From the sequence record MW845758.1: 64,000 nucleotides of DNA. The stretch is one strand, 5' to 3'. The translations under genes were made by a program, and so were the position numbers. Positions within the stretch are counted from its first letter, which is position 1, and each line of letters begins with the position of its first letter. Below the pieces are notes generated by a model. That model saw only the letters and a list, made by a program, of their open reading frames with translations, ran no database searches and was not told where the DNA came from. Of this stretch, positions 1 through 21,344 are shown in pieces.

Positions 1-114
1 GCTGCGCGCGAAGGAATGTGACTGTTCTGACAGCTCGCCCACGGCCGCTGTCTGACCGGGCTCGTTGTTAATCAGCGCCCCGATTTGGATAAAGCCTTGT
101 ATATCTAAACTCAT
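1..114 (-). CDS. 5' part of a conserved virion-type protein, running off the left edge (MSLDIQGFIQIGALINNEPGQTAAVGELSEQSHSFARS...)
   Basis: Hand translation, open from ATG at 114 to base 1; divergent from the ORF at 139; N-terminus resembles phiKZ-like structural proteins (recollection, not a search). Confidence 0.6.
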   Translation of the reverse strand, partial: MSLDIQGFIQIGALINNEPGQTAAVGELSEQSHSFARS

Positions 115-138
115 TATAAAAATACCTCGAGGTGAGCA

Positions 139-633
139 ATGATCGCATCACTGATTAAAATTCTTCCGATCCTAAAATTGTTGATGGAAGTCTTTAAACC
201 GGGTGACGGTGAAAATGTTACCCGCACAGCAAAAATTACTTCACTTGCAATAACCTTGTTACTCGTTTACGGCGGTTTCGTCTCTTACCTGTACTTCCAG
301 CAATTTCATTTACTGGTGCAGGTGCGTGAACATGATCGCTATATGGAAACCGGCTACACCGAGAAGAAAGGACAGGTGGACAAGCAAGCGGACGACATAC
401 GCGACCTGTATAAGCAGCTGTTTGTGTGTCTGGGCAAGGAGCCATATGATAGTTCGAAAAGTCCAGCAGTCTCGGCGGCTCTGATGCCGCCCCCACCTGT
501 TGTTGCGCCCGAAGTGCCGGTTCATGCGAATCCGGCTCCCGTAAAGAAGCGTGACGCGGCCAAACGGCCAGTGGGGGTGTTAGAGACCAACGATTTCCGT
601 CAGTCTATTATTGACCATTTAAATGGGGAATGA
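139..633 (+). CDS. Membrane protein, candidate i-spanin
   Basis: RBS GAGGTG; single TM segment (ITSLAITLLLVYGGFVSYLYF), heptad-like helix, Pro-rich tail; stop overlaps start of the lipoprotein gene. Confidence 0.6.
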   Translation: MIASLIKILPILKLLMEVFKPGDGENVTRTAKITSLAITLLLVYGGFVSYLYFQQFHLLVQVREHDRYMETGYTEKKGQVDKQADDIRDLYKQLFVCLGKEPYDSSKSPAVSAALMPPPPVVAPEVPVHANPAPVKKRDAAKRPVGVLETNDFRQSIIDHLNGE

Positions 634-1109
634 CCATGAAGCCTTATTGTCTCGCCCTCGCTCTGTTCTTCCTGACAGGGTGCGGTCTCGATGGCACTAA
701 GGGTACTATGCCGGCTCCGCAGCGCGGGTGGCCGGCTAGGCAAATGGACAGTCCGCCTTTCGCTGCGAAGTATCCTTTGGGGAACGACGATCAGAAAGCG
801 TTTGAGACATATGTTATCGATGTGAATGTATACGCGTATTACGTCTATACCTACGCTCGTAGTCTTAACGAGTATGTCAAAGCGCGAGGCTGGCATCCGC
901 CGAAAGTAGCACCTTTGTGCGAAGAGTTCGAAACACCTGATTTGCATCCCATCCCTGAACGCATCACGCTCGATCGTAACTCCCGAACCCCGGAACAAAT
1001 CAGCCAAGACTTGGCCAACCAGTTCCGTCAGATTCTGGACAACTACCGAACCGACCGTAAAGCGTTCCGGCACAACTTCGCAGAACATGAGAAGACGTGT
1101 CTGAACTGA
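630..1109 (+). CDS. Lipoprotein, candidate o-spanin
   Basis: Signal peptide II with lipobox LTG-C, no Asp at +2, Pro-rich mature part; ATGA overlap with upstream TM gene. Confidence 0.65.
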   Translation: MTMKPYCLALALFFLTGCGLDGTKGTMPAPQRGWPARQMDSPPFAAKYPLGNDDQKAFETYVIDVNVYAYYVYTYARSLNEYVKARGWHPPKVAPLCEEFETPDLHPIPERITLDRNSRTPEQISQDLANQFRQILDNYRTDRKAFRHNFAEHEKTCLN

Positions 1110-1113
1110 GTGT

Positions 1114-1154
1114 ACCCCTTACTGCCTTCGGGTGGTAAGGGGTCTCTTTTATTT
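1114..1154 (+). terminator. Intrinsic terminator
   Basis: CCCCTTACTGCC-TTCG-GGTGGTAAGGGG stem followed by a T tract. Confidence 0.8.
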
Positions 1155-1200
1155 TACATCATCAACATTTCTAATGTATATCAACAGGAGCGCGTTAATA

Positions 1201-1902
1201 ATGAGAAACGTCAAGATTCCCTCTATCGTAGTTGGAGTGGATGCCGAAACTAAATCCTTACGCCCGGATGCGTACATTCTCTCAATCGGTCAGGCAGCTT
1301 TTGATGTTGCCACGCTGCGTCTGATTGGGGCCGCTTACACCGCAATCGATCCTAACGACCCGGAGGCTTCCAAAGTCTTCCACACTGACCCGTCAACTAT
1401 CGGGTGGTGGGAAGGTAAAGACCGTCCCGAGTATGCCCCGTCTGAAGCTGCCCGTCTGGAAGCGTTCTCTGGTACCACGAACATTCGTGATGCACTGTGG
1501 AATGCCAAGAAGTTCTTGGACAGCCTCGGCGACAAAGATATCGTGCTGACCATGCGTGGCCCAGACTTTGATGCGCCTATCCTGATGAATGCGTTTGCAC
1601 AGTGCGACGTACCGCCGGGTAAATTCCGTAAGTTCTCCATGCTCGATTCAGACCGTACTGCTGAGCGTTTTGCTGCAGCGTTTGGTTTGGACCCGGATAT
1701 GGATGCGGAAGCGCACAACTGGACACGCGGTAAAGACTATATTGAACACCATGCCGGGTTCGATGCCGCCAAAGAAGGGTATATGACTGCGCGTCTGTAC
1801 CACTTGGCGCTTATCGCCCGTACTCACGGTTTCCCACGCATGCTCGAGGCACATGAGCAACTGCGTACCGGCGAGTACATCCCGACCATGTTCTTGGAGT
1901 AA
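1201..1902 (+). CDS. DEDDh-family 3'-5' exonuclease (RNase T / Rv2179c-like)
   Basis: VGVDAET (ExoI), RGPDFDAPIL (ExoII), HHAGFDA (ExoIII); start moved to ATG 1201 after RBS CAGGAG. Confidence 0.8.
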   Translation: MRNVKIPSIVVGVDAETKSLRPDAYILSIGQAAFDVATLRLIGAAYTAIDPNDPEASKVFHTDPSTIGWWEGKDRPEYAPSEAARLEAFSGTTNIRDALWNAKKFLDSLGDKDIVLTMRGPDFDAPILMNAFAQCDVPPGKFRKFSMLDSDRTAERFAAAFGLDPDMDAEAHNWTRGKDYIEHHAGFDAAKEGYMTARLYHLALIARTHGFPRMLEAHEQLRTGEYIPTMFLE

Positions 1903-1912
1903 GTGAGGATTA

Positions 1913-3430
1913 ATGAAAGAGTACGACGTCGCCGTGTTATACACGGACGGAAGTCATACCACCGCCCCAATGGGTTCTGGGGCGGGGATTCATGGCTATC
2001 TGTACAATAAAGCCGATTTCAAATCGGAACGTGGTTATTTCGCGGACGGAATTCCCGAAGCGGTGACGCCGGAAGAGTATCAGATTATCCCTCAGACTGA
2101 AAAGCTGCCGAAGTTACCGGACGGTGTGGTCGAGTGGGTGAACTGTACGATTCCGGTTCCCAAGGACAAGTTCTCGGACGTCGGGGAATTGGTAGCCTTT
2201 ATCTGTGCGTTTGATAATGCACCGTTCAAAGCGAAGAAGTACGTGATTCACGTGGATGCGACTTACGTGCTGAACACCTTCACCAAATGGATTGACGGCT
2301 GGGCGTCTAAAGGTTGGATACGTGCCGACGGTACCCCTATCGCTAACAAGAAATTGATTGAGCGGATTTTCGAAATCAAAACCGATTGCAAGAAGAACGG
2401 CATTACGGTGAAGGTGGTGAAAATCAAAGGGCACTCCGATCGCTACGGTAACGACCAAGCGGACAAACAAGCCCGTCAGGGTTCCACGATGTCCGCAACG
2501 TTTGAGAACGTCGAGCACCGTCCGTTCTGGAGCAGTGAAGAGTCTCTGCCAACAATTGAGCTGGCGGGTGGCAGTGGTGTGCAGATTGGGGCAGCAAACT
2601 TGCCGGCCATCAATACGCAGAAGTACCACTATCTGCAAGTGAACGAACCACACCCGATGTGTACCGTCAAAGACCAGCAATGGTATTACCTGTTCTCGGG
2701 CAACCACTCGAAGGACAAGGACGATATCGTTCTGCTCGGTAAAATGGTACCGGATACCATGTTCTCCATTACCATGGCAAAAGAGCCGTGGGAGAACCTG
2801 TATGCCATCGTCAACACACACGCGAAGTCTGCGTGGGAAGACACTCCGGTATTGAAACGCTTTGACCCGATAGCGATTGTGAACGGGGATTTCTTACGGC
2901 GTAAGAAGTTCGTGGAAGCATCGAAAGAAGGTCTGCCGGTTGCTCAGATGACATTTGAAGCAAACGGGAATGTGTGGATGTATCAGGACTTGGCCATCAG
3001 TCGTATCCTGCGTCCGGCACTGCTCTCTTATCGCGCCATTGAGTTTCGTGATGAACTCACACAGATGTTAAAGTCCGCTCTGTTGAAAGAGCCGCACATC
3101 GTGATGAATGATATCACTGACTTACTGTTCGATGAGAAAGGCAAGCCGAACAAAGAGTTCTATCGCAGTGTTGACCGTTCGTTTGAGATTAAGGCGAAGA
3201 TTCCCGGCACTGAGCAGACTATCCCGATTATTTTAAGTCGTGGGATAGACTTGCCACAGCGTACGGATTTGAACCGTATCAAAGAACCAACGGGACGTTT
3301 CTACGTGTGTTGCTGGCGACCACAGGAACGTTACGTGCGTTATGCGGTAGTGTATATCGGGGAAGAGTACAACGGGTTATGGATTGCCTATTACGCTGCA
3401 AACCGCATCCTTCCTAACGAGATTAAGTGA
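1913..3430 (+). CDS. rnhA: Ribonuclease HI with long C-terminal extension
   Basis: LYTDGS, ELVA, HVDATYV, KIKGHSDRYGNDQADKQA catalytic motifs. Confidence 0.9.
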   Translation: MKEYDVAVLYTDGSHTTAPMGSGAGIHGYLYNKADFKSERGYFADGIPEAVTPEEYQIIPQTEKLPKLPDGVVEWVNCTIPVPKDKFSDVGELVAFICAFDNAPFKAKKYVIHVDATYVLNTFTKWIDGWASKGWIRADGTPIANKKLIERIFEIKTDCKKNGITVKVVKIKGHSDRYGNDQADKQARQGSTMSATFENVEHRPFWSSEESLPTIELAGGSGVQIGAANLPAINTQKYHYLQVNEPHPMCTVKDQQWYYLFSGNHSKDKDDIVLLGKMVPDTMFSITMAKEPWENLYAIVNTHAKSAWEDTPVLKRFDPIAIVNGDFLRRKKFVEASKEGLPVAQMTFEANGNVWMYQDLAISRILRPALLSYRAIEFRDELTQMLKSALLKEPHIVMNDITDLLFDEKGKPNKEFYRSVDRSFEIKAKIPGTEQTIPIILSRGIDLPQRTDLNRIKEPTGRFYVCCWRPQERYVRYAVVYIGEEYNGLWIAYYAANRILPNEIK

Positions 3431-3437
3431 GGCGCTT

Positions 3438-4184
3438 ATGCTTCGTGTTTTTAGTCATGTATTGACATTGCACAGCGAAAAACTGGTTTCCGCGTTAGGC
3501 GAGTATTACCGACTCGTGTTTACGCAGTACGCACACACCATGAAATACACGCCGGCTGAAAAGGAGGCCGTTGACGCGGTCTGTGAAGAGGCCGGGCGTT
3601 GGATGGTGGCGAACATCCTGTTGGAGGGTATCGCCTTAGCTAACGCTCGCACACACCTCTCACCGAGCCTTCGAAGCTTTGACGTTTACGGTGATAAGCT
3701 GGCAGAGCAGTTTGACAGTCCGGTATTGCGTAACAAACTGAGCACCAATACCACCGTTGGGGATTTCTTTGCCTACGTCTGTGCGACCACACCCCTTTCT
3801 GCTTTACTGGAAGGGGCCATGAAATGGTTTGTCGAACAGTTCATGGATGAGGTGTACAACCTGCTTGGCAAAGACTCGTTTGCGATAGACAACTACACGG
3901 GGATTTACATGACCCGTGAGCTACTCATTAAGCAGCTAAAGCAAAGGAAAATCATCCTGCCCTTTATCGAGCCAATGGAGTGGTTGTTTGTGGCGAACGT
4001 CGATCCTGCCGATAGGGATTCTTTACCATCCATTGCAGCGGATATGGAGTACGCGTTTGTTGTACAGGGTGAAGCGTTCATCATTCCTGAAACGTTCCCA
4101 ACCATGGTACTCCCGGACGAAACCGAAGAGATAGAACTCTACGTGTTAAAGCCCGAGGTTATTAAAGAACTGAAAAGGCTGTGA
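3438..4184 (+). CDS. Hypothetical protein
   Basis: Long ORF, RBS GAGG before ATG 3438. Confidence 0.8.
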   Translation: MLRVFSHVLTLHSEKLVSALGEYYRLVFTQYAHTMKYTPAEKEAVDAVCEEAGRWMVANILLEGIALANARTHLSPSLRSFDVYGDKLAEQFDSPVLRNKLSTNTTVGDFFAYVCATTPLSALLEGAMKWFVEQFMDEVYNLLGKDSFAIDNYTGIYMTRELLIKQLKQRKIILPFIEPMEWLFVANVDPADRDSLPSIAADMEYAFVVQGEAFIIPETFPTMVLPDETEEIELYVLKPEVIKELKRL

Positions 4185-4203
4185 GATAGATATTATCTCC
4201 GTG
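4185..4203 (+). promoter_or_regulatory. Phage promoter-like motif, copy 1 (GATAGATATTATC-TCC-GTG)
   Basis: Same motif found five times, always intergenic and upstream of + strand genes. Confidence 0.7.
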
Positions 4204-4224
4204 GTAAATCGTTAGGAGTCACTT

Positions 4225-4944
4225 ATGTTACGCGTGGTCTTACCCGAACTGTATCAGCTTACCACGCCTGCGGCGGAGAAGCTGTTTAACATTGTTTGGG
4301 ATCGTTATTGCCCGGGGAAGATTGCAGACCGTCCTGAATTGTGGGTACGTCGAGATGAGTTCTATCTCGGCGCTTACCCGCTGTTCGTTAAAACGTTTGC
4401 AGTGGCTATCACCGGAATGCTCGATGCTGTAAACCTTGGTCGGGATTTTGATATTCACGAGTTGGAGTTTAACTACGAGGATATCTACAACGACTACCAG
4501 CACGAAGACCTAAACGATGAGATGGAAGGCGAAGTGTTGCTTTTCATGAACTTCGTTGAAGGCGTGTTGGGGGCAGGGGATGCGTTCTTGGATGAGTTGG
4601 CTGATAAACTCGGCACACCTTTTCAAACGTTGTTGGGTTTGCGTAAGCAACACAACATCCTCGGTTTCTGGTTGGATGTCTACGCCACAGACATGCGCAT
4701 TTGGGAAGACAACCCCACGGTCTTTGCTATCCAAGAAGGGGACTTTGAACCACAGTGGCATGACAAATGGTACTCAGGTCCGGACAGCAAGTTTTACGAG
4801 TTAGCGAAAGAAGACGGGATGGAGTTCTATTACTGGGCAGGCAACATCGTGGCAGAATCACCACGTGCGACTATCCCAGAAGGCGAGCCTGTTACCCTGT
4901 GTCATTTAACCCATGAAGCGGTTGCGTTCATGGAACCCATGTAG
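4225..4944 (+). CDS. Hypothetical acidic protein
   Basis: ORF with RBS AGGAG. Confidence 0.85.
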   Translation: MLRVVLPELYQLTTPAAEKLFNIVWDRYCPGKIADRPELWVRRDEFYLGAYPLFVKTFAVAITGMLDAVNLGRDFDIHELEFNYEDIYNDYQHEDLNDEMEGEVLLFMNFVEGVLGAGDAFLDELADKLGTPFQTLLGLRKQHNILGFWLDVYATDMRIWEDNPTVFAIQEGDFEPQWHDKWYSGPDSKFYELAKEDGMEFYYWAGNIVAESPRATIPEGEPVTLCHLTHEAVAFMEPM

Positions 4945-4969
4945 TTTATAAATCGTAAGGAGTATTACC

Positions 4970-5326
4970 ATGAAATTGAATGAACTGATTGCACAGGCAC
5001 AGAAGGCAACTAAAGCAACTGATGGCATGCTACTGATTACGGTTGAACCAACCGTTAATCGTTTTGCGTTGGGTTTTACTGAAACCTGCCCTCAGTTAGC
5101 CGGCACCGAAATCGACGCGGCAAGAAAGTTGCGTGTGGGTGCACAACAAAATCGTGCGTGGGTGGTAGCGTACACCGTTACCCATAACCCGCATTGCATG
5201 CTCGCAAACGAAGTTGACATTGCGCTTCACCTGTGGCAGGACGGCGATAACGTGATTGCGCGTATCGCTAAGTTCCGTGGTCTCGGTAGTAAGCCCGAGG
5301 GTGACTTCGTTCTCGATCAGGAGTAA
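4970..5326 (+). CDS. Hypothetical protein
   Basis: ORF with RBS AAGGAG. Confidence 0.85.
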   Translation: MKLNELIAQAQKATKATDGMLLITVEPTVNRFALGFTETCPQLAGTEIDAARKLRVGAQQNRAWVVAYTVTHNPHCMLANEVDIALHLWQDGDNVIARIAKFRGLGSKPEGDFVLDQE

Positions 5327-5329
5327 CGC

Positions 5330-5770
5330 ATGCTGACAGTGCAAAGCGAAACACTGATGCAAGTCGACCAACTCTTCCGCCACAAATACACTGAACTCAT
5401 CGCTGACGAACGCCTTAACTGGACGTGCGCAGCGGTGAAGTATTTTTTAATGCGGGTCGTCATGGGAGACCGTGACATTCGGGGCGAGAAGCTGGTTGAG
5501 GTTCTTCAAGAGGTGAAGACACACTGGGTGGCCGCGGGTCTCCCGGAGGTGTTGTGGTGGCGAGTGAATCATTTCTTTGTGTGGTTGGAAAGCTTCTCTC
5601 AACACCCGGTTCATCTGCTTGACAGGGAACTCCATCGCATGCTCGAACAAAACTACGTTGAAATTCAATACACCGTACAAAACCTGATATTCAATCAGTA
5701 TCGGGTGATTCGGGCGTTTGACTTGTTACTCACCCATGCATTATTGGAGCCACTCGATGCAGCAAGTTAA
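5330..5770 (+). CDS. Hypothetical protein
   Basis: ORF with RBS AGGAG, tightly packed. Confidence 0.8.
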   Translation: MLTVQSETLMQVDQLFRHKYTELIADERLNWTCAAVKYFLMRVVMGDRDIRGEKLVEVLQEVKTHWVAAGLPEVLWWRVNHFFVWLESFSQHPVHLLDRELHRMLEQNYVEIQYTVQNLIFNQYRVIRAFDLLLTHALLEPLDAAS

Positions 5771-6392
5771 AATGCACATCCTCATGGCGTTAGAGGATTA
5801 CTTCAAACGTATGTCGTTCCACGAGGAGGCCGTGAAGACGGCCTACCTTATTGCAGCGAGAGAAATCTCAAAGCAGGACTACATCGCGGACTGGGCACCC
5901 CTCTCTGGCATGTGGCAGGCGTTACGATTTATCGTGCATGAAGGTGGGCTTGAGCTTGCCCTCGCGGATGAGTATATCGAACCGCGGATAATGAAAAAAG
6001 TACGCCAACTTCTCTTAGCTTTGATGGGGGACTTTGATAACTTTCCACGCCACTCCATGGACGTTAACCGAAGCTACCTCGGCAGTATCAGTGAAGTAAA
6101 GGCATCACTCGACATGCCGTTGGTGTTTGCTCGGGACGAAGACCTGTTAAATTACTCCCTGTGGTTTGCAGGTGAAATGGAAAGTCCGTGTTACGTCCAG
6201 CATCGCATGATAATTGAGACGCAGCAGGAGTGGTGTAATTTGGTGACCAAATACCCACACGGTCCGTACATGTGGCGGGCTGATTGGGACGCATTTGTGC
6301 CGGATATCAACAACATGCGACACAAGCACGTCATGATTCTCGACGTGGAATCAGAACGTGAGCGTTTCGAGATAATCTCTAAGGGGAAATAA
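5757..6392 (+). CDS. Hypothetical protein
   Basis: ORF overlapping upstream stop; RBS GGAG before ATG 5757 (start uncertain). Confidence 0.75.
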   Translation: MQQVKMHILMALEDYFKRMSFHEEAVKTAYLIAAREISKQDYIADWAPLSGMWQALRFIVHEGGLELALADEYIEPRIMKKVRQLLLALMGDFDNFPRHSMDVNRSYLGSISEVKASLDMPLVFARDEDLLNYSLWFAGEMESPCYVQHRMIIETQQEWCNLVTKYPHGPYMWRADWDAFVPDINNMRHKHVMILDVESERERFEIISKGK

Positions 6393-6994
6393 TGCAAGTC
6401 ATTTTGAACATGGCGCTCGGTGAACAAGCGCCGAAAATTGCGGAGCTGATGGTGAACCTCCGTAAAGATTTGTCGTTTGAGCTGCACGACATCATTACCA
6501 AGTACGAACGGGGTCTGAAGAAGGACACCAGTAAGACGCACTTCGTGGTCGAGGCAGATGCTATCGTCGATGAGCTTACCGAGATGGTTGTTGGCCAAGC
6601 AAAAGACGTCATGCAGAAAACCTTTGCGATTCCAGCGAACGGCTTTGACACGGTGGACGAGTTAGCGCTGCGGGTTGAAGAAGCATTCAGCAAGGGCGTG
6701 ACGGAAATCGAGTCATACATCCACCTCAGCACCCGCTCGACGTTTGTGGCCTGTGGTGAGACCAATGAGAAGTCCATGCTCTTCCAGATGGAATCACTCA
6801 ACGATTTGTTCGGGGCACAAGACACGATGCGGGTAGAAAGTATCGTGGGTAAGGCCAAAGAGCAGGTCGGTGTTCTCGCTCGCATGGAAATGGAATCGCT
6901 GTTAAACCGACTCCAATCGTATAAGCTTTCTGCTGAACAGGTAGATGGCATTCACGAGATGGGTCGCGGCGAAATGACGGTAAGTCGTTTCTAA
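6392..6994 (+). CDS. Hypothetical acidic helical protein (MQVILNM)
   Basis: TAATG coupling to the upstream gene. Confidence 0.85.
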   Translation: MQVILNMALGEQAPKIAELMVNLRKDLSFELHDIITKYERGLKKDTSKTHFVVEADAIVDELTEMVVGQAKDVMQKTFAIPANGFDTVDELALRVEEAFSKGVTEIESYIHLSTRSTFVACGETNEKSMLFQMESLNDLFGAQDTMRVESIVGKAKEQVGVLARMEMESLLNRLQSYKLSAEQVDGIHEMGRGEMTVSRF

Positions 6995-14318: not shown

Positions 14319-15146
14319 ATGGGTAAAATTACTGATCTAATCTTAAATGGTCCGCCGGAGGACAGTCCCGTTGGGGTTGAACTTCGAGACGCACACTGGT
14401 CGCTTATCAAGCTAATGCCGATATCATATTCGGATTGGAAAGAGCTGGCAACCCAGTATGCGAACAACCCGATGTACGTGGGTAAGTCCACGGCTGAACC
14501 CAAAGAACGTTTAGGTCGACTGGCGAATGCTTTGTCGGGCGGTAACGTGAAAGGGTTGAGTGTAGACTTTACATGGAAACGTTTTATCGAAGGGTTGGTC
14601 TTGGTGAATGTTGAAACCTTGACCATGTCGATTAAGACGTATCGGGGACGCTTTGAAGACACGAAGGTGGTGAAAGGCTATTGCCATCCGCAACGTGACT
14701 TGCTGCGTACACTGAATGGGGAAGACGATGAGGATCTGCGGGGCAGTGCATCTGATGCATTGAACCTCTATTTCCAGAACGCGCAACAAACCGCGGAACA
14801 GGTCATGGAGCATATCCTCTTGAAAGTGTTGTGGTCGTTGTTTGCGGCTTACGGCATTACCGAGTCCCAGTGGCGTCAACTGGTGACCAAGTATGTCAAC
14901 AACTCTGACAACTGTCCTCAAATCACCAGTCGGCGTAGTGACCGTCGTCACAACCTGCAACAATCTATTCGCCACACCAAGAAGCTTAGCTGGAAACGTT
15001 TCTTAGAAGCGCTCAAGGCTATCGACGTTCGCAAGTTCGAATGCACGTTCTTAGTTCACGTTCCGGGTCAGTACGACGTTGAACATTCCTTCGAGGTGGA
15101 TGTGACTGCACTTTCTTTCCGGAGTAATAAGAATGAACCCGAGTGA
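14319..15146 (+). CDS. Hypothetical protein with an internal domain duplication
   Basis: Two repeats: YSDWKELATQYANNP..FTWKRFIEGL and ESQWRQLVTKYVNNS..LSWKRFLEAL; RBS AAGGTG. Confidence 0.8.
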   Translation: MGKITDLILNGPPEDSPVGVELRDAHWSLIKLMPISYSDWKELATQYANNPMYVGKSTAEPKERLGRLANALSGGNVKGLSVDFTWKRFIEGLVLVNVETLTMSIKTYRGRFEDTKVVKGYCHPQRDLLRTLNGEDDEDLRGSASDALNLYFQNAQQTAEQVMEHILLKVLWSLFAAYGITESQWRQLVTKYVNNSDNCPQITSRRSDRRHNLQQSIRHTKKLSWKRFLEALKAIDVRKFECTFLVHVPGQYDVEHSFEVDVTALSFRSNKNEPE

Positions 15147-16458
15147 CTTTAACCTAACGAACCGCATCACGAAGGCGACGTCGGGGGTAACTGACCGAGT
15201 CAGCCAAGCCCAAAGCGCAGTTAACAATGTGCAGAACCAAGCACAGAACGCTGTCTCTCGTGTAACCAGTACGGTGGACAACGTTGAGAAGGGGATTACC
15301 AATGCCGCAGACACCGCGAAAAACGCCTACAGTAAAGCAGGCGAAGCTTACGACAAAATTACTGACGGGGCATCGACACTGGGCTCAAAAATCGGCAATC
15401 TCTTTGGCGGTAGCGACATCGCTAGCACTGGGGGGACGAAGACTGCTGGATCAGGTGCAAGTGGTGCCTCCCCGGGAAACAAAATAGGGGGATTCTCCAC
15501 TGACCCGAAATCGGTGTTGCCAAGTTTAGACCCACTGAAGCGTGAAGTCGAAACGCCGTTTAAAGCGGCTAACGAAGTGGCCACTGGGGCACTGGATTAC
15601 TTAAAGCCGAGTAAAATCAGTAGCTTACTCGGTTCTGGATTCAGTACCCTGACGTCGCTGCGCGATAAAGGTCTGGCAGCCGTCGGTACGGATTTTGCTT
15701 CGGTGAAGTCTCGTGTGGAATCGACCATGAAGGTCGCAGGCCAGCTTGCTAAACTGCCGGGTCAAGTCCAGTCGGAAATCAACGGCTACGTCAGCGATTT
15801 CAACTCTGCGAAATATCAGGTGACGTCCATTGTTGATGGAGCGAAGACCACCTTTAACTCATTCAAAGATTTGGATGATTATTTGGCGATCGATAACTTC
15901 ATCTCGAGCTTTAAGACATCCAGTTCGGATTCTTACTCAACGCTGGACATCGGTACAACCTCTGCGGTGATTTACGGACTGTCCAGTTCTTTGGCCAGTT
16001 ACAACATGCCGGAGAAAGTTGTCCCGTTGGTGGATGCCGTAGCCGACCCGGTTGCTCAAGCGCAGTTGTATCGTGAGCTGGCAGTGCAGTCCTCCGCACT
16101 CGGTAGTCTGACGTCTGTTGAGTTCTACGTTGGTAAACTCTCTGACTCTGACAAAGTGCTGATTTCTGCTGAAGTGATTGTGAACCTGTTGATGAACTTG
16201 CAGATGGAAACCAACCCACCGTACAAAACCTACGGTACACGTTTGCTGGCGTTGTTTAATACGCTCGACGCACGTTGGGACAAATCGGCCGTTGTGGGTC
16301 AAACGGATGAGGTGGAACTCTACCCTTATACGTTCTGTAACACTAACGCAATTCAAGCGTTGTTGACCACAGAGAAACGTCCGTTTGTGTGTGCTGCCGG
16401 TTACCTGAGTTACGACCGGGCAGACACCATGGTTAACAAGTTCTTCGACGCGGCTTAA
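15133..16458 (+). CDS. Probable virion protein with low-complexity A/S/T/N/Q-rich N-terminus
   Basis: 441-aa ORF; composition typical of jumbo-phage virion proteins (inference). Confidence 0.6.
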   Translation: MNPSDFNLTNRITKATSGVTDRVSQAQSAVNNVQNQAQNAVSRVTSTVDNVEKGITNAADTAKNAYSKAGEAYDKITDGASTLGSKIGNLFGGSDIASTGGTKTAGSGASGASPGNKIGGFSTDPKSVLPSLDPLKREVETPFKAANEVATGALDYLKPSKISSLLGSGFSTLTSLRDKGLAAVGTDFASVKSRVESTMKVAGQLAKLPGQVQSEINGYVSDFNSAKYQVTSIVDGAKTTFNSFKDLDDYLAIDNFISSFKTSSSDSYSTLDIGTTSAVIYGLSSSLASYNMPEKVVPLVDAVADPVAQAQLYRELAVQSSALGSLTSVEFYVGKLSDSDKVLISAEVIVNLLMNLQMETNPPYKTYGTRLLALFNTLDARWDKSAVVGQTDEVELYPYTFCNTNAIQALLTTEKRPFVCAAGYLSYDRADTMVNKFFDAA

Positions 16459-16468
16459 GGGTGCGCAC

Positions 16469-17509
16469 ATGACAATTCCTGCAGACTTCGACGACCCACG
16501 GGCTCGAGAGATACTCCGCGACCTGATTTTACAGGTGGGGGGTATCCAGAACCAGTCGGCCGATATCAGTGTTCCGCGGGCTATTAAGCGGTTGTATCAT
16601 GACCGACTCTGTGGAATCAATAAAGCGGCATTGAACCCTAACCTTCCGTTAAGTGAACGTATTGGCCCGTACATCTACGAGCAACACGACACCACTTACG
16701 CGGCAGCGATGGCCAGTCGCTACGGCTTTAACTTAGGGCCGGAAGCCCGTCAGCGGTATGACGTAATGAAATACCCTGGCGATATTCGCTTGGAGCTCAT
16801 CGGCGAACAGCGCGACGAATTCGTCCGCTATCTGCGTAACATTGGCGGTACTCCGACCAACACCGATATCATCGTTGCGATGGACGGTGTGAATCACCTG
16901 AACATCTATTCGCGCAGTCGTGTGATGCTGGGCCGTTTAGTCAGTAACTTCTGGCAAGACACCAGTCCGTATCGTACGCTGCACGGCGAGATTGCAACAC
17001 TGGAAGGCTACTACCATTTACTGCGTTTGCTCGACTACGCTTACACTCAGCACGAGTTTGAGTTCAGTATCGAGTCTGACCTGTATCTGTTGGATAAGCT
17101 GATTCACCGTTATCCGGAAATCCACCGTCTGTTCCACATGGACGGTACAGAGGCAATTGGCTACGGTCGGAAAATGAAAGCCATGGTGTACGGCGGTACC
17201 GCGTACAAACCCAAGGCGTTCTCTCCGCACTTAGAACGTTGTTTCGTTTGGGCAATGGCCGGTAAGTTCCATCAGGTGAAAATCGGTGACGATACACCGT
17301 GTGGTATCTACATCGCGGAACTGGTTAACGCGAACGTTCCTCTGCTGCACTATTATGTGAAACACGACGGTCCTTACACACCGGCGTACGCAGAATGGTT
17401 GCCAAACATCTGCCAGTGGTTAGGGGAGAACATCGACCCGTTCGATAACGACTTTAACGTGGCGGCTTTACAGCAGAAGGTATTGAGCGAATATGAGCCG
17501 ATTGGGTAA
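16469..17509 (+). CDS. NADAR-family (T4 gp30.3-like) domain protein with N-terminal extension
   Basis: LNIYSRSRVMLGRLVSNF..ATLEGYY..RLFHMDGTEAIGYGR resembles gp30.3 LEIRSN..ALSNF..GGLEGF..RIFGLSGLAAQQAGR. Confidence 0.65.
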   Translation: MTIPADFDDPRAREILRDLILQVGGIQNQSADISVPRAIKRLYHDRLCGINKAALNPNLPLSERIGPYIYEQHDTTYAAAMASRYGFNLGPEARQRYDVMKYPGDIRLELIGEQRDEFVRYLRNIGGTPTNTDIIVAMDGVNHLNIYSRSRVMLGRLVSNFWQDTSPYRTLHGEIATLEGYYHLLRLLDYAYTQHEFEFSIESDLYLLDKLIHRYPEIHRLFHMDGTEAIGYGRKMKAMVYGGTAYKPKAFSPHLERCFVWAMAGKFHQVKIGDDTPCGIYIAELVNANVPLLHYYVKHDGPYTPAYAEWLPNICQWLGENIDPFDNDFNVAALQQKVLSEYEPIG

Positions 17510-18155
17510 TATCCTTGCCGAGATGGATAAAACACGCGAAGACGGGATTGTAAAAGTCGCGCGTGAGTCCATCTCTGTGGAAAAGGAAAAAGAGTATTGC
17601 ATGTGGGTACGTCCAACTGAAGCGGGCTGGGCGTGGTTGCGTGATCATGCGGGTGAGTTCCATCTGGACGTGATGATGCCAATGCAAGGCGGTCGTCGTC
17701 GTGTGCGTATCCATGCGGATAAAGCAGAGCTGACGGTGAAAACCTTTGACGGGGCAGAGCGCGAAGAGGAGAACTCAGAAATCGGGATGAAGTCCGCCAT
17801 GTCGTTTTACGCAGATGGGTTCTTGACCCACCTTGTAAAGCGTGTCACTGTGGAACCCGAAGAGGAAGTGAAGGCAAAGGGCGGTAAGCATTGGGACATC
17901 GATGTATTCTTTGTCGCACAAGACCACCCAGAGCTCCCCGACGCAGATGCGTTGAAAGCCCTGTTTGACGTCGCGAAGCAAGGTACCGCTTACGGCGATT
18001 GGGTGAAAGTGGAACTGGAAGTGGAGCGGTTTGATTTAGAAAGCATTGTTGACCTGATACCGTTCGCGGTAGAAGAGGCGATGCCATCTAAACCGTCTTC
18101 ACCGGATGCGCAGGAATTCCTACGGCATTATTGGGATTCTGTAACACGACTTTAG
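17493..18155 (+). CDS. CYTH-like (triphosphate tunnel metalloenzyme) protein
   Basis: EKEKEY, RVRI, LTVK, EEENSEI, KR, WDIDVF, VELEVE in canonical CYTH order; start could be 17523. Confidence 0.7.
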   Translation: MSRLGNILAEMDKTREDGIVKVARESISVEKEKEYCMWVRPTEAGWAWLRDHAGEFHLDVMMPMQGGRRRVRIHADKAELTVKTFDGAEREEENSEIGMKSAMSFYADGFLTHLVKRVTVEPEEEVKAKGGKHWDIDVFFVAQDHPELPDADALKALFDVAKQGTAYGDWVKVELEVERFDLESIVDLIPFAVEEAMPSKPSSPDAQEFLRHYWDSVTRL

Positions 18156-18157
18156 CA

Positions 18158-18195
18158 GTCCCCCACTGACTTCATGTCAGTGGGGTTGCTTTATT
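18158..18195 (+). terminator. Terminator-like hairpin
   Basis: CCCCACTGAC-TTCAT-GTCAGTGGGG followed by a T-rich tail. Confidence 0.65.
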
Positions 18196-18224
18196 TAAAC
18201 GCACACTTTGGAGGACTACTGAGA

Positions 18225-18878
18225 ATGGCTAGGGATCTGCGGACGTACAGTAGCTATCGCCAGATGCTGAATCGTTGTCTAAATACAAAAAATCATAACT
18301 ACCATTTATACGGTGGAAGAGGCATTAAAATCTCTCCGCGATGGTTAGAATCGTACACTAACTTTTTAGAGGATATGGGCATACGCCCTGAGGGGACCAC
18401 GCTAGACAGAAAAGATAACGACGGCGATTATTGTTTAGACAATTGTAGGTGGTCGACGCACCTAGAGCAGTGTTACAATCGTAGCACATCGCATTGGTTG
18501 ATTCTTCACTATGACAACGTCAATCAATACATCGATAGTGAATTGATTAATTACACCAATTTACCCGATCTGAGAATTCTGATAGAGGGTTTGATGGATC
18601 GCTATCCTCTCTCTAAGATTGAGGGCGGTGTTAAGTTCATCAGTAATATGCACGGTGTTGCAACCTTCGCTCTGCTTAAGGAATTCTCAGACAAAGATTT
18701 GTCAATAGGTGACAAAGTTAACATGCTAACTCTGCACAGACCACTTAAGGTCGGTAGAGGGAATTTAATCTTGTACGAATGGCTTTGCGACTGTGGTAAT
18801 CTAGTTACTGGGTATTGCAACCATGTGGTGGGTGATGATAGAAAATCTTGCGGTTGTCACCGACGCACCACCGAGTGA
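18225..18878 (+). mobile_element. Free-standing HNH homing endonuclease
   Basis: YRQMLNRC..YGGRGI..TLDRKDNDGDYCLDNCRW HNH core; C-terminal CDCG..SCGC; AT-richer than neighbours; RBS GGAGG. Confidence 0.85.
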
Positions 18879-18898: not shown

Positions 18899-18931
18899 TC
18901 CCTCACTTTCGGGTGAGGGATATTTTCTTTT
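18899..18931 (+). terminator. Intrinsic terminator
   Basis: TCCCTCAC-TTTCGG-GTGAGGGA then T-rich tail. Confidence 0.75.
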
Positions 18932-19355: not shown

Positions 19356-19769
19356 ATGAACAAGATTGAATACATCGAAGGTCAAGGACTTTTCATCAAC
19401 GATCAACTGATCCCAAATTCCGATGACTACCAAAAATGGCGTGATGTGCACCGCACGTACCACGACGGTTTTAATTTGGTTATCACTAACGAACTGGTGC
19501 TGGGTGCCAACCTCGATAAACTTCATCGCGGTCATTGTTTCCGTATCAGTTCCGAGTGCGCCGGTGGGATTCTCAAAGCTGCTGATTTCACCAGTGGCAT
19601 GTATGCGTTTCGCCAGTTAGGTATCCTTCGCGAGTTGTCAGGCAAACACGTAGGTCAGGGTCATCCGCCAACGGTGCTCAAACCTGATAGCATCGTCATG
19701 GTGAGCTACTTCAGTGAAGATGGCGACCCATTGGCCTTTAACATCTTCTGGGGGTTCTTCAATGACTAG
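19356..19769 (+). CDS. Hypothetical protein (MNKIEYIEG)
   Basis: Track start 19281 lies inside a terminator; ATG 19356 preferred. Confidence 0.7.
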   Translation: MNKIEYIEGQGLFINDQLIPNSDDYQKWRDVHRTYHDGFNLVITNELVLGANLDKLHRGHCFRISSECAGGILKAADFTSGMYAFRQLGILRELSGKHVGQGHPPTVLKPDSIVMVSYFSEDGDPLAFNIFWGFFND

Positions 19770-20337
19770 TCTTAACCCATTAGCGGTTGTCGAACAGGTC
19801 GAGCGTTGGAACGTTGCTGCGCTCGTGTATCAGAACGGCAATATCCGTCAACAAATCACCAAATACTACCGCATGTTAGGTACGGTTGCAGAAGGTGTGC
19901 AGAAGATGGACAGCTTGTTGGTCTCAGCGGGCGTAGGACAGGCTGTAACGACGTTAATCGGCGTACTCGGGTTCTACTCCCGTATTCGCAACGTCTCCGC
20001 AGAACACGTCTCAGAGCTTATACTGAAGAGTGCTCTGAATAACATCCCGCCGGGTTTGAAGTACGGCAACGACTACAACACCATGTTGTTCGAACATCAC
20101 AAGGTAATGACTGAGATGTTTGACGTGCTCTTGGAGAACCAAGAAGCTAAGCGTCAGAACGACATCGTGTTCTACACTAAACTCGCGGAAGCGTTAGCAC
20201 TGCTGCTCAGTATCGCCACATCCAAAGATATCGTGGTGACCCGCAGTATTCTCAACGCCGTCAATAAACTTGAAGTAACCCAAGGCGTCATGAACGAACT
20301 GGGGTTATTCGTCAAAACTGTCACGGGAAATAAATAA
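19762..20337 (+). CDS. Hypothetical helical protein
   Basis: Overlaps upstream stop; TAATG-coupled to thyA. Confidence 0.8.
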
Positions 20338-21344
20338 TGCGTCAATATCTGAATCTGTTGGAAACTGTACTGGCCTACGGTCGTGAAAAGAAAGACCGTA
20401 CCGGTACTGGCACGGTTTCAATGTTCGGTGGTCAGATGCGCTTTGACCTGACCGAAGGTTTCCCACTGGTGACCACGAAGAAGGTTCACCTGCGTTCGAT
20501 TATCCATGAGCTGTTGTGGTTCCTCAAAGGGGACACCAACATCCAGTACCTAAAAGACAACAACGTCACTATCTGGGACGAATGGGCAGATAAGGACGGC
20601 GATCTCGGACCAGTGTATGGTAAGCAGTGGCGGAGCTGGACGGCTCACACGGACATGCCGGTCTTTAACCGCAAGGCGTGCGATGAGTTAGAAGCAGAAG
20701 GCTGGGAAGAAGCCGGCGCGCGTGATTCGAATATCCTGTACACCAAAACGATTGACCAGATTTCCAAAGTCATCGACCAGTTGAAGAACGACCCGGATAA
20801 CCGTCGTATCATTGTCAGTGCGTGGAACGTCAGTGAGTTGGATGAGATGGCCTTAGCACCATGCCATGCGTTCTTCCAGTTCTACACGCGTGAGCTGACG
20901 CTGCACGAGCGTGCGCTTGCCGCGGACATCAACGAAACCGAAGCGTATTTCCTGAACCTCAACGAGAAGCATCGGGAACAATACCATGAAGAGCTCGATC
21001 ATTTAGATACACCTCGTCGTAGTCTGAGCTGTCAGTTGTATCAGCGCAGCGCAGATTGCTTCCTCGGTGTTCCGTTCAATATCGCCTCGTATGCCCTGTT
21101 AACTGAAATGGTGGCACAACAGGTGAACATGGTGGCGGAAGAGTTCATCTGGACTGGCGGTGATGTTCACATTTACTCCAACCACATGGAGCAGGTGAAC
21201 GAACAGCTGACGCGTGACCCACATCCGCTTCCGAAACTGAAAATCAAACGCAAACCTGATTCTATCTTCGACTACCAGTTCGAAGACTTTGAAGTTGAAG
21301 GTTACGTTTCCCATCCTGCGATCAAAGCGCCGGTTGCTATCTAG
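20337..21344 (+). CDS. thyA: Thymidylate synthase
   Basis: [57 protein letters not shown]. Confidence 0.98.

Follow-up and report, generated by a model that had tools for sequence, protein, structure and literature searches.

Results

A gene for a two-domain protein in Erwinia phage pEa_SNUABM_11

The DNA analysed here is a 64,000 nucleotide stretch of sequence record MW845758.1, from Erwinia phage pEa_SNUABM_11 (genus Wellingtonvirus, 251,480 bp). We refer to this stretch as the window. Its first position is position 186001 of the record, and coordinates are those of the window unless the record is named. Our subject is an open reading frame (ORF) on the forward strand at positions 16469-17509 (record 202469-203509). 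It corresponds to gene pEaSNUABM11_00255, which is annotated 'hypothetical protein', and the translations are 100% identical. The product has 346 amino acids and two domains. An all-helical N-terminal domain (residues 1-134, positions 16469-16870) precedes a domain that we assign to the NADAR (YbiA-like) fold (residues about 135-343, positions 16871-17497). The gene starts 10 nt past the stop of the preceding gene, an AAGGG motif lies ahead of the start, and the last 17 nt are shared with the start of the next gene.

An earlier note on this DNA had proposed, from the letters alone, that the C-terminal domain is an ADP-ribosyl hydrolase resembling T4 gp30.3 (AdfN). The proposal was based on the motifs NIYS, LSNF, LEG and RLF..DG..A..YGR. 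All were found in the ORF: N145-I-Y-S148, L178-E179-G180 and R220-L-F...D225-G...A229...Y232-G-R234 as described, and the second element in the form L157-V-S-N-F161, where the wider family has the consensus LSNF. The resemblance goes beyond chance; residues E179, N145, G155 and G173 are present in 78/78 family members and H294 in 77/78, and the set of relatives is large (see below).

Relatives of the protein in other phages

Searches with the single sequence recovered little. Pfam and NCBIfam returned no match even at E 10, and no PDB sequence was matched. The sole family match was PHROG 652, a function-unknown family (E 4.5e-92). A BLASTP comparison with T4 gp30.3 (sequence from NC_000866) gave E 0.73, which is not significant. 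Hence, the resemblance to gp30.3 can be demonstrated only by profiles and fold. A search of sequencing runs yielded no RNA run and one weak DNA run only.

Broader homologue searches were more productive. Whereas a word-indexed search found only 4 close relatives, tblastn matched the protein in a total of 113 phage records. It is present at full length in SPN3US-like jumbo phages that infect Erwinia, Salmonella, Cronobacter and Proteus, and 157-kb Vibrio phages match the C-terminal half alone. With phmmer, 1.84 billion cluster representatives gave 90 matches at E ≤ 1e-3. These comprise ~20 orthologues (E 1e-182 to 1e-27) and ~70 short proteins of 120-220 amino acids, aligned to residues 134-190 and a second stretch. 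The database names recovered for the short relatives were all 'hypothetical protein'. A large number of short relatives in many other phages are unannotated because the NADAR and Phage_30_3 Pfam models both miss them. Three alignments were built: A2 contains 21 orthologues, A4 contains 56 short proteins without the query, and A3 combines the two sets.

Profiles and fold identify a NADAR domain

The two sets are clearly homologous. The hhalign alignment of A2 with A4 spans 157 columns (residues 131-330) and has a probability of 100% (E 1e-41). The A4 profile, which includes neither the query nor a T4 protein, was then informative about the fold. Against the PDB it matched 8bau, the Phytophthora NADAR (PnNADAR), at E 7e-6 and 2b3w, E. 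coli YbiA, at E 4e-3. Against T4 gp30.3 the probability was 93.8% (E 1.7e-7). When run over whole phage genomes, the A4 hidden Markov model (HMM) identified one site each in pEa_SNUABM_11, SPN3US, Asesino and T4. These were the gene studied here (record 202859-203431, E 1e-28), SPN3US gp224 (1e-34), Asesino gp246 (2e-28) and T4 gene 30.3 (9e-6). There was no match in the phiKZ genome. The earlier note had suggested a profile check. A4 reaches 8bau, 2b3w and gp30.3; A2 alone does not, and the Pfam models PF08719 and PF08010 do not match the protein.

We also modelled the protein with AlphaFold2, using alignment A3. The mean predicted local distance difference test score (pLDDT) was 94.9 and the predicted template modelling score (pTM) was 0.90; only residues 1-6 fell below a pLDDT of 50. 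The model was compared with 48,161 PDB representatives by exhaustive structural alignment (VIA-align). The best match was 8bau (Z 9.7; 148 residues, root mean square deviation 3.3 Å, model residues 135-326), followed by 2b3w (Z 9.1) and 8bat, a DarG1-type NADAR from Geobacter lovleyi (Z 8.4). No other structure reached Z ≥ 5 and the next scored 4.8. T4 AdfN was recognised as a NADAR through the same three structures, with Z above 9 (PMC11257639). In our model, strands at residues 143-145, 168-170 and 173-175 are followed by the core helices (178-287) and a hairpin (296-303). This agrees with the published description of the NADAR fold (PMC9503650). A helical insert at residues ~191-222, after the catalytic helix, is particular to the jumbo-phage clade, as judged from the hhalign comparison of A2 with A4.

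Taken together, the structural matches to all three solved NADARs and the profile links bear out the earlier assignment of the C-terminal domain. We consider this assignment well supported and have very little doubt that the domain belongs with the phage-type NADARs (gp30.3/AdfN-like, with His), which makes the protein a remote relative of T4 AdfN.

Residues of the active site

In the NADAR superfamily the first core helix begins with a catalytic glutamate (E43 in PnNADAR, E88 in the E. coli C7 protein, E36 in T4 AdfN), with a lysine seven residues on (K50, K95 and K43, respectively). Our hmmsearch and hhalign alignments place E179 (codon 17003-17005), present in 78/78 family members, at the position of the catalytic E36 and E43 (PMC11257639, PMC11543638). 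E179 is the LEG glutamate singled out in the earlier note. R186 (codon 17024-17026) occupies the position of the phosphate-binding lysine (T4 K43, PnNADAR K50). R234, in the G-R motif (codon 17168-17170), aligns with R79 of PnNADAR, which contacts the pyrophosphate (PMC11543638). G233 and R234 are invariant among the orthologues, and position 234 is Arg or Lys in 69/78 sequences. H294 (codon 17348-17350), within the sequence HYYV at the start of the last β-hairpin, aligns with H123 of T4 gp30.3 (PMC11125620). A histidine in the last strand marks the phage NADARs, as opposed to the YbiA family (Glu) and the BC4488/DarG1 family (Asp) (PMC11125620, PMC11543638). H294 is conserved in 77/78 sequences and K266 in 74/78. 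Both His183 and Arg186 are invariant in the jumbo-phage clade.

The change from lysine to arginine at position 186 is conservative. The equivalent substitution in the E. coli C7 NADAR, K95R, leaves hydrolysis intact in vitro (PMC11543638). The invariance, or near invariance, of E179, R234, K266 and H294 over 78 sequences argues for retained catalysis. We therefore consider the enzyme likely to be active, judging from the alignments.

The N-terminal domain

Residues 1-134 form seven helices in the AlphaFold2 model, with pLDDT above 90, and the pTM of 0.90 indicates that they pack on the NADAR core. Its fold gave no lead to function: the VIA-align matches over residues 6-98 were only generic helical bundles (best Z 4.8), and a protein-atlas search with the domain gave no usable match. 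The domain is neutral to slightly acidic, with an isoelectric point (pI) of about 6.

The earlier note had called these ~130 residues unique and ascribed a targeting role to them. The first claim did not hold, since an extension of 65-146 amino acids, with few conserved positions, is present in 19/21 orthologues. The second is unsupported. The extension is missing from the short single-domain relatives. In a tree of the NADAR domain (maximum likelihood, quick search only, midpoint-rooted) the jumbo-phage proteins form one clade, with a Shimodaira-Hasegawa-like approximate likelihood ratio test (SH-aLRT) value of 100. This clade is nested among the single-domain forms, which is consistent with a single gain of the extension. 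The fold extensions of DarG1 and PnNADAR enlarge the surface that binds the substrate; by analogy, this is the probable role of the N-terminal domain and of the insert that follows the catalytic helix.

A conserved block with a putative triphosphate tunnel enzyme

The surroundings of the gene are conserved in Asesino (gp238-251) and SPN3US (gp216-229). The shared order is UvsX, a virion RNA polymerase subunit, several function-unknown genes, the 441 amino acid gene, the NADAR gene, the 220 amino acid gene, a MazG-like gene and thymidylate synthase.

The upstream gene (15133-16458, forward strand; 441 amino acids, PHROG 5028) adjoins the NADAR gene in every locus with upstream sequence. Its product has a low-complexity N-terminus. 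In 15/17 measured loci this gene, encoding 400-470 amino acids, ends 6-13 nt before the NADAR start; in the other 2/17 it apparently overlaps by 32 nt, given the start picked. An 80-residue segment of the product shares homology with the phiKZ baseplate pin ring protein gp174 (E 2.5e-6 to PDB 9xph, E 5.6e-8 in the phiKZ genome), and covers 80 of about 430 positions. Five more distant IMG/VR loci (L036, L037, L068, L076 and L083) likewise have a member of the upstream-gene family close to a NADAR-like gene.

The downstream partner (17493-18155, forward strand; 220 amino acids, PHROG 7768) is strictly linked to the NADAR gene. Among 17 related IMG/VR loci measured, this gene encodes 217-222 amino acids and the offset of its start from the NADAR stop ranges from -17 to +6 nt. 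HMM searches detected it in 21/21 jumbo-clade loci, even beside an orthologue that has no N-terminal domain, and in 0/59 short-family loci. The partner is unannotated and sequence methods failed, with no Pfam match. Its AlphaFold2 model (pLDDT 85.5) matched almost exclusively triphosphate tunnel metalloenzymes (TTMs, of CYTH/TTM fold). The matches were the CYTH protein 2gfg (Z 9.8), plant adenylyl cyclase (Z 8.8), E. coli YgiF with bound tripolyphosphate (Z 8.3) and the inorganic triphosphatase NE1496 (Z 8.2), with viral RNA triphosphatases and Vtc4 lower in rank. Alternating tunnel charges are invariant (E30/E32/E34, R69/R70/R72, K132/D135/D137 and K172/E174/E176), and at 49-78% identity the partner is better conserved than the NADAR. 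A strong terminator-like hairpin at 18161-18185 (forward strand; 10 pairs, then a T tract) closes the putative transcription unit. The NADAR gene is probably co-transcribed with that of the triphosphate tunnel enzyme.

Beyond this hairpin lies an HNH endonuclease gene (18225-18878, forward strand; PHROG 8790/374), bounded on its far side by a second strong terminator-like hairpin at 18899-18920. It looks like a mobile insertion because no such gene is annotated at the equivalent site of SPN3US or Asesino. A MazG-like pyrophosphatase gene (19762-20337, forward strand) abuts the thymidylate synthase gene (20337-21344, forward strand), with one base shared. This nucleotide-metabolism pair is 2 kb downstream of the NADAR block.

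Around 40 short-family loci no partner family dominated; Macro, canonical NADAR, SLOG and RNA-repair genes occurred as single cases. In uncultivated phages of IMG/VR some short-family members are fused to other domains. These are DUF4326 (L055, ORF 5692-6423; L067, 5314-6840), DUF488-N3a (L047, 5584-6444; L094, 5566-7203) and SLOG of the YpsA/YAcAr type (L067 and L094). Separately, IMG/VR locus L039 contains a 2148 amino acid frame (22-6468, forward strand) without a Pfam match, with a NADAR-like motif near its C-terminal end, followed by an ORF of 1558 amino acids.

The phage is of the nucleus-forming type and encodes an AdfM orthologue

The earlier note took the phage to be of the nucleus type, and this is supported by homology. 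Neither phiKZ chimallin nor PHROG 4795 found a match in the pEa_SNUABM_11 genome, both being too distant. A ChmA homologue is nevertheless encoded at record 16631-18415, with 52% identity to Asesino gp039 (E 3e-185). Asesino ChmA (gp039) forms the phage nucleus experimentally (PMC11724907), and Asesino and SPN3US both appear in a list of phages with experimental evidence for a nucleus (PMC13282480). Each of the latter carries an orthologue of the NADAR gene (gp246 and gp224, respectively). By homology, pEa_SNUABM_11 is thus a chimallivirus of the nucleus-forming type.

The phage nucleus is only partly protective against DarT2 (Morgan et al., PMC13309987). Chimalliviruses need, and import, the macrodomain de-ADP-ribosylase AdfM, and Asesino gp217 is one such protein (PMC13309987). 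We found an intact AdfM orthologue in pEa_SNUABM_11 (pEaSNUABM11_00224, record 180635-181126), annotated 'hypothetical protein', with 51% identity to Asesino gp217. The Pfam Macro model had no match in the genome and so missed it. The earlier note considered a de-ADP-ribosylase notable in a phage with shielded DNA. The enzyme is there, but the surprise is reduced because chimalliviruses were already known to need AdfM and the same phage has an orthologue. With a NADAR in addition to AdfM, the phage would be equipped against guanine adducts and not only thymine adducts.

Discussion

Comparison with characterised de-ADP-ribosylases

The protein shares much with T4 AdfN (gp30.3, PF08010). Both have the YbiA-like fold, the glutamate of the L-E-G motif (E179 and E36), the arginine of the G-R motif, and the hallmark of phage NADARs, the histidine of the last β-hairpin (H294 and H123). 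Both are encoded by orphan genes without a toxin partner. Conversely, pairwise similarity is not significant and the PF08010 HMM does not match the Erwinia protein, which has Arg186 at the position of AdfN Lys43. The Erwinia protein also has an extra 134 amino acid helical N-terminal domain and an insert after the catalytic helix. Its gene has a fixed place in a block of three genes, one of them for a TTM enzyme, and the phage that carries it is a nucleus-forming jumbo phage.

Among NADARs of other families, the YbiA family (PF08719; 2b3w and 8bau) provides the best structural match, and E179 and R234 align with E43 and R79. PnNADAR further has a helical insert in the same topological place. 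However, the Erwinia protein has His at the family-defining Glu (E125) and is not detected by the PF08719 HMM. Equivalents of W89 and R93 have also been lost; F251 is aromatic, and there is no Arg. The NADARs associated with DarT1 (DarG1; BC4488 family, represented by 8bat and the E. coli C7 protein) share the fold (Z 8.4) and the pairing of Glu with a basic residue for ADP-ribose binding. They too have an N-terminal extension beside the core. This extension is a small basic β-β-α unit proposed to bind DNA, whereas that of the Erwinia protein is much larger, all-helical and has a pI of about 6. The two also differ in the last strand (Asp in DarG1, His in the Erwinia protein), and no DarT adjoins the Erwinia gene. 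Finally, AdfM (PhiKZ gp104, Asesino gp217) is likewise a de-ADP-ribosylase kept by nucleus-forming phages despite shielded DNA. AdfM has an unrelated macrodomain fold and is specific for thymine-ADP-ribose (made by DarT2), and its import into the phage nucleus has been demonstrated.

A candidate counter-defence enzyme

The protein has the fold of the NADARs, is homologous to them, and conserves the residues that bind and attack ADP-ribose. Our favoured reading, drawn by analogy, is of a two-domain protein with a catalytically competent phage-type NADAR N-glycohydrolase in its C-terminal ~210 residues and a role in counter-defence. We judge this to have about an even chance of being right. On this model E179, R186 and R234 would bind the ADP-ribose moiety and, with H294, the enzyme would cut the bond between ribose C1'' and the nucleobase nitrogen. 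The likeliest substrate would be guanine-N2-ADP-ribose on phage single-stranded DNA, formed by host toxins of the DarT1 type. The protein would thus act as an orphan-antitoxin counter-defence enzyme and complement the AdfM orthologue of the same phage, which would act on thymine adducts. The phage NADARs assayed so far (T4 AdfN, Bas32 and Bas60) all strip guanine-ADP-ribose from DNA and counter DarTG1 (PMC11257639, PMC11125620). By analogy with these, an anti-DarT1 DNA-cleaning role is plausible and is our best single guess. The incomplete exclusion of DarT2 by the phage nucleus (PMC13309987) and the presence of DarTG in some E. amylovora genomes (PMC13480210) speak for this reading.

Several results weigh against this reading. 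The PF08719 (NADAR) HMM was silent on the protein (at E 10) and in a six-frame search of the genome, and the PF08010 (Phage_30_3) HMM was silent on both protein and genome. The latter matched 4/58 family members weakly (best E 1.3e-4). Since PF08719 also fails on T4 AdfN, a proven NADAR, the Pfam models are blunt here. The orthologue-only profile A2 found no NADAR in the PDB and gave a probability of 7.6% against gp30.3. As A2 alone stops short, the link to NADARs is transitive, via the intermediate short family. Foldseek placed YbiA first among PDB entries, but at E 0.95. The phosphate-binding lysine is replaced by Arg186 in 21/21 orthologues, and this position is variable in the short family. 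K95R of the E. coli C7 NADAR does not rescue cells from DarT1 (PMC11543638). The geometry of the pocket is drawn from alignments. DarTG is apparently uncommon in E. amylovora and is not among the prevalent systems listed (PMC13480210). Lastly, the fusions to DUF4326, DUF488 and SLOG domains and the strict TTM linkage can be read as signs of soluble nucleotide or ADP-ribose-derived substrates, rather than DNA adducts (PMC9503650).

Alternative substrates and roles

The last point is the basis of an alternative that we regard as possible, if on the unlikely side. The NADAR would act on a soluble nucleotide or ADP-ribose derivative rather than DNA, such as an immune signal, a nucleotide that is toxic or a by-product derived from NAD. 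Phosphate removal and cleavage of the N-glycosidic bond would be divided between the NADAR and the co-transcribed TTM enzyme, acting in sequence. The TTM-fold partner speaks for this: it lies immediately downstream in all jumbo-clade loci and in none of the short-family loci, is more conserved than the NADAR and keeps its alternating charged tunnel residues. Iyer et al. describe the same viral NADAR architectures as our short-family fusions and interpret them as handling soluble ADP-ribose derivatives (PMC9503650, PMC7824862). YbiA-type NADARs, moreover, cleave small riboflavin intermediates (PMC11543638), and MazG-like and thymidylate synthase genes are nearby. Conversely, all experimentally tested phage NADARs act on guanine-ADP-ribose DNA (PMC11257639, PMC11125620), a soluble substrate has been demonstrated for no viral NADAR, and neighbouring genes may serve different pathways. 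In view of the TTM linkage and the domain fusions we retain a soluble-substrate role as a candidate.

The same linkage allows a broader proposal, which we think rather improbable. The NADAR and the overlapping TTM gene would form a fixed module of two enzymes, found specifically in nucleus-forming phages that resemble SPN3US, with the N-terminal domain adapting the NADAR to this setting. Jointly, the enzymes would destroy a nucleotide-derived product of host immunity, or rid nucleic acid of ADP-ribose, whether before the phage nucleus or within it. We found no NADAR-TTM partnership in the open literature searched.

Less probable still is that the enzyme reverses ADP-ribosylation of another nucleic-acid target, either RNA or the cytidine adducts of other host ADP-ribosyltransferases. 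NADARs are reported to reverse cytidine ADP-ribosylation (PMC12945103), and NADAR is mentioned repeatedly in PMC11833690, which deals with enzymes reversing RNA ADP-ribosylation. The invariance of His183 and Arg186 in the jumbo-phage clade could reflect a different substrate. However, nothing in the locus points to RNA, and AdfN, the nearest characterised relative, is specific for guanine in DNA.

A virion-associated or purely structural protein, in which the NADAR fold is kept with little or no catalysis, seems to us very improbable. Such a protein would be expressed late with the baseplate protein and delivered at infection. The segment that the upstream neighbour shares with the phiKZ gp174 baseplate pin ring, and the recurrence of the upstream-gene family near NADAR-like genes in five more distant loci, are in keeping with this. 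So are the replacement of the phosphate-binding lysine by arginine and the argument of Iyer et al. that phage NADARs are often packaged (PMC9503650). Against it stand the conservation of E179, R234, K266 and H294 and the limited extent of the gp174 match. Furthermore, the orthologues are not annotated as structural, and the main text of PMC5105663 does not mention SPN3US gp223-225 when it treats virion proteins.

That the motifs resemble those of a NADAR by chance, as the lack of Pfam or NCBIfam matches and the BLAST and Foldseek values might suggest, is effectively refuted and we reject it: in the structural comparison only the three solved NADARs reach Z ≥ 5, with a clear gap to all other entries, and the independent A4 profile ties the family to NADAR structures in the PDB and, across whole genomes, to T4 gene 30.3.

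Significance

Iyer et al. note that NADARs are common in jumbo phages (PMC9503650, PMC7824862), so that the present case is not novel in kind. What appears to be new is the assignment of this family, its two-domain form and the fixed pairing with a TTM enzyme. When Erwinia phages were surveyed with DefenseFinder, no NADAR-type anti-defence gene was reported (PMC13480210); hence, the family goes unrecognised by current tools. NADARs are the newest class of phage 'orphan antitoxins' and have so far been shown only in T4-like, T5-like and rV5-like phages. The present assignment gives PHROG 652, hitherto a function-unknown family, a fold and an activity that can be tested. This family is conserved among nucleus-forming jumbo phages of the SPN3US-like group, with Asesino and SPN3US as tractable models. 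Together, the NADAR and the AdfM orthologue suggest that these phages have enzymes against both guanine and thymine DNA ADP-ribosylation, despite their protein shell. Such dual coverage bears on the leakiness of the phage nucleus, and the strict linkage to a TTM gene is a new lead on the substrate.

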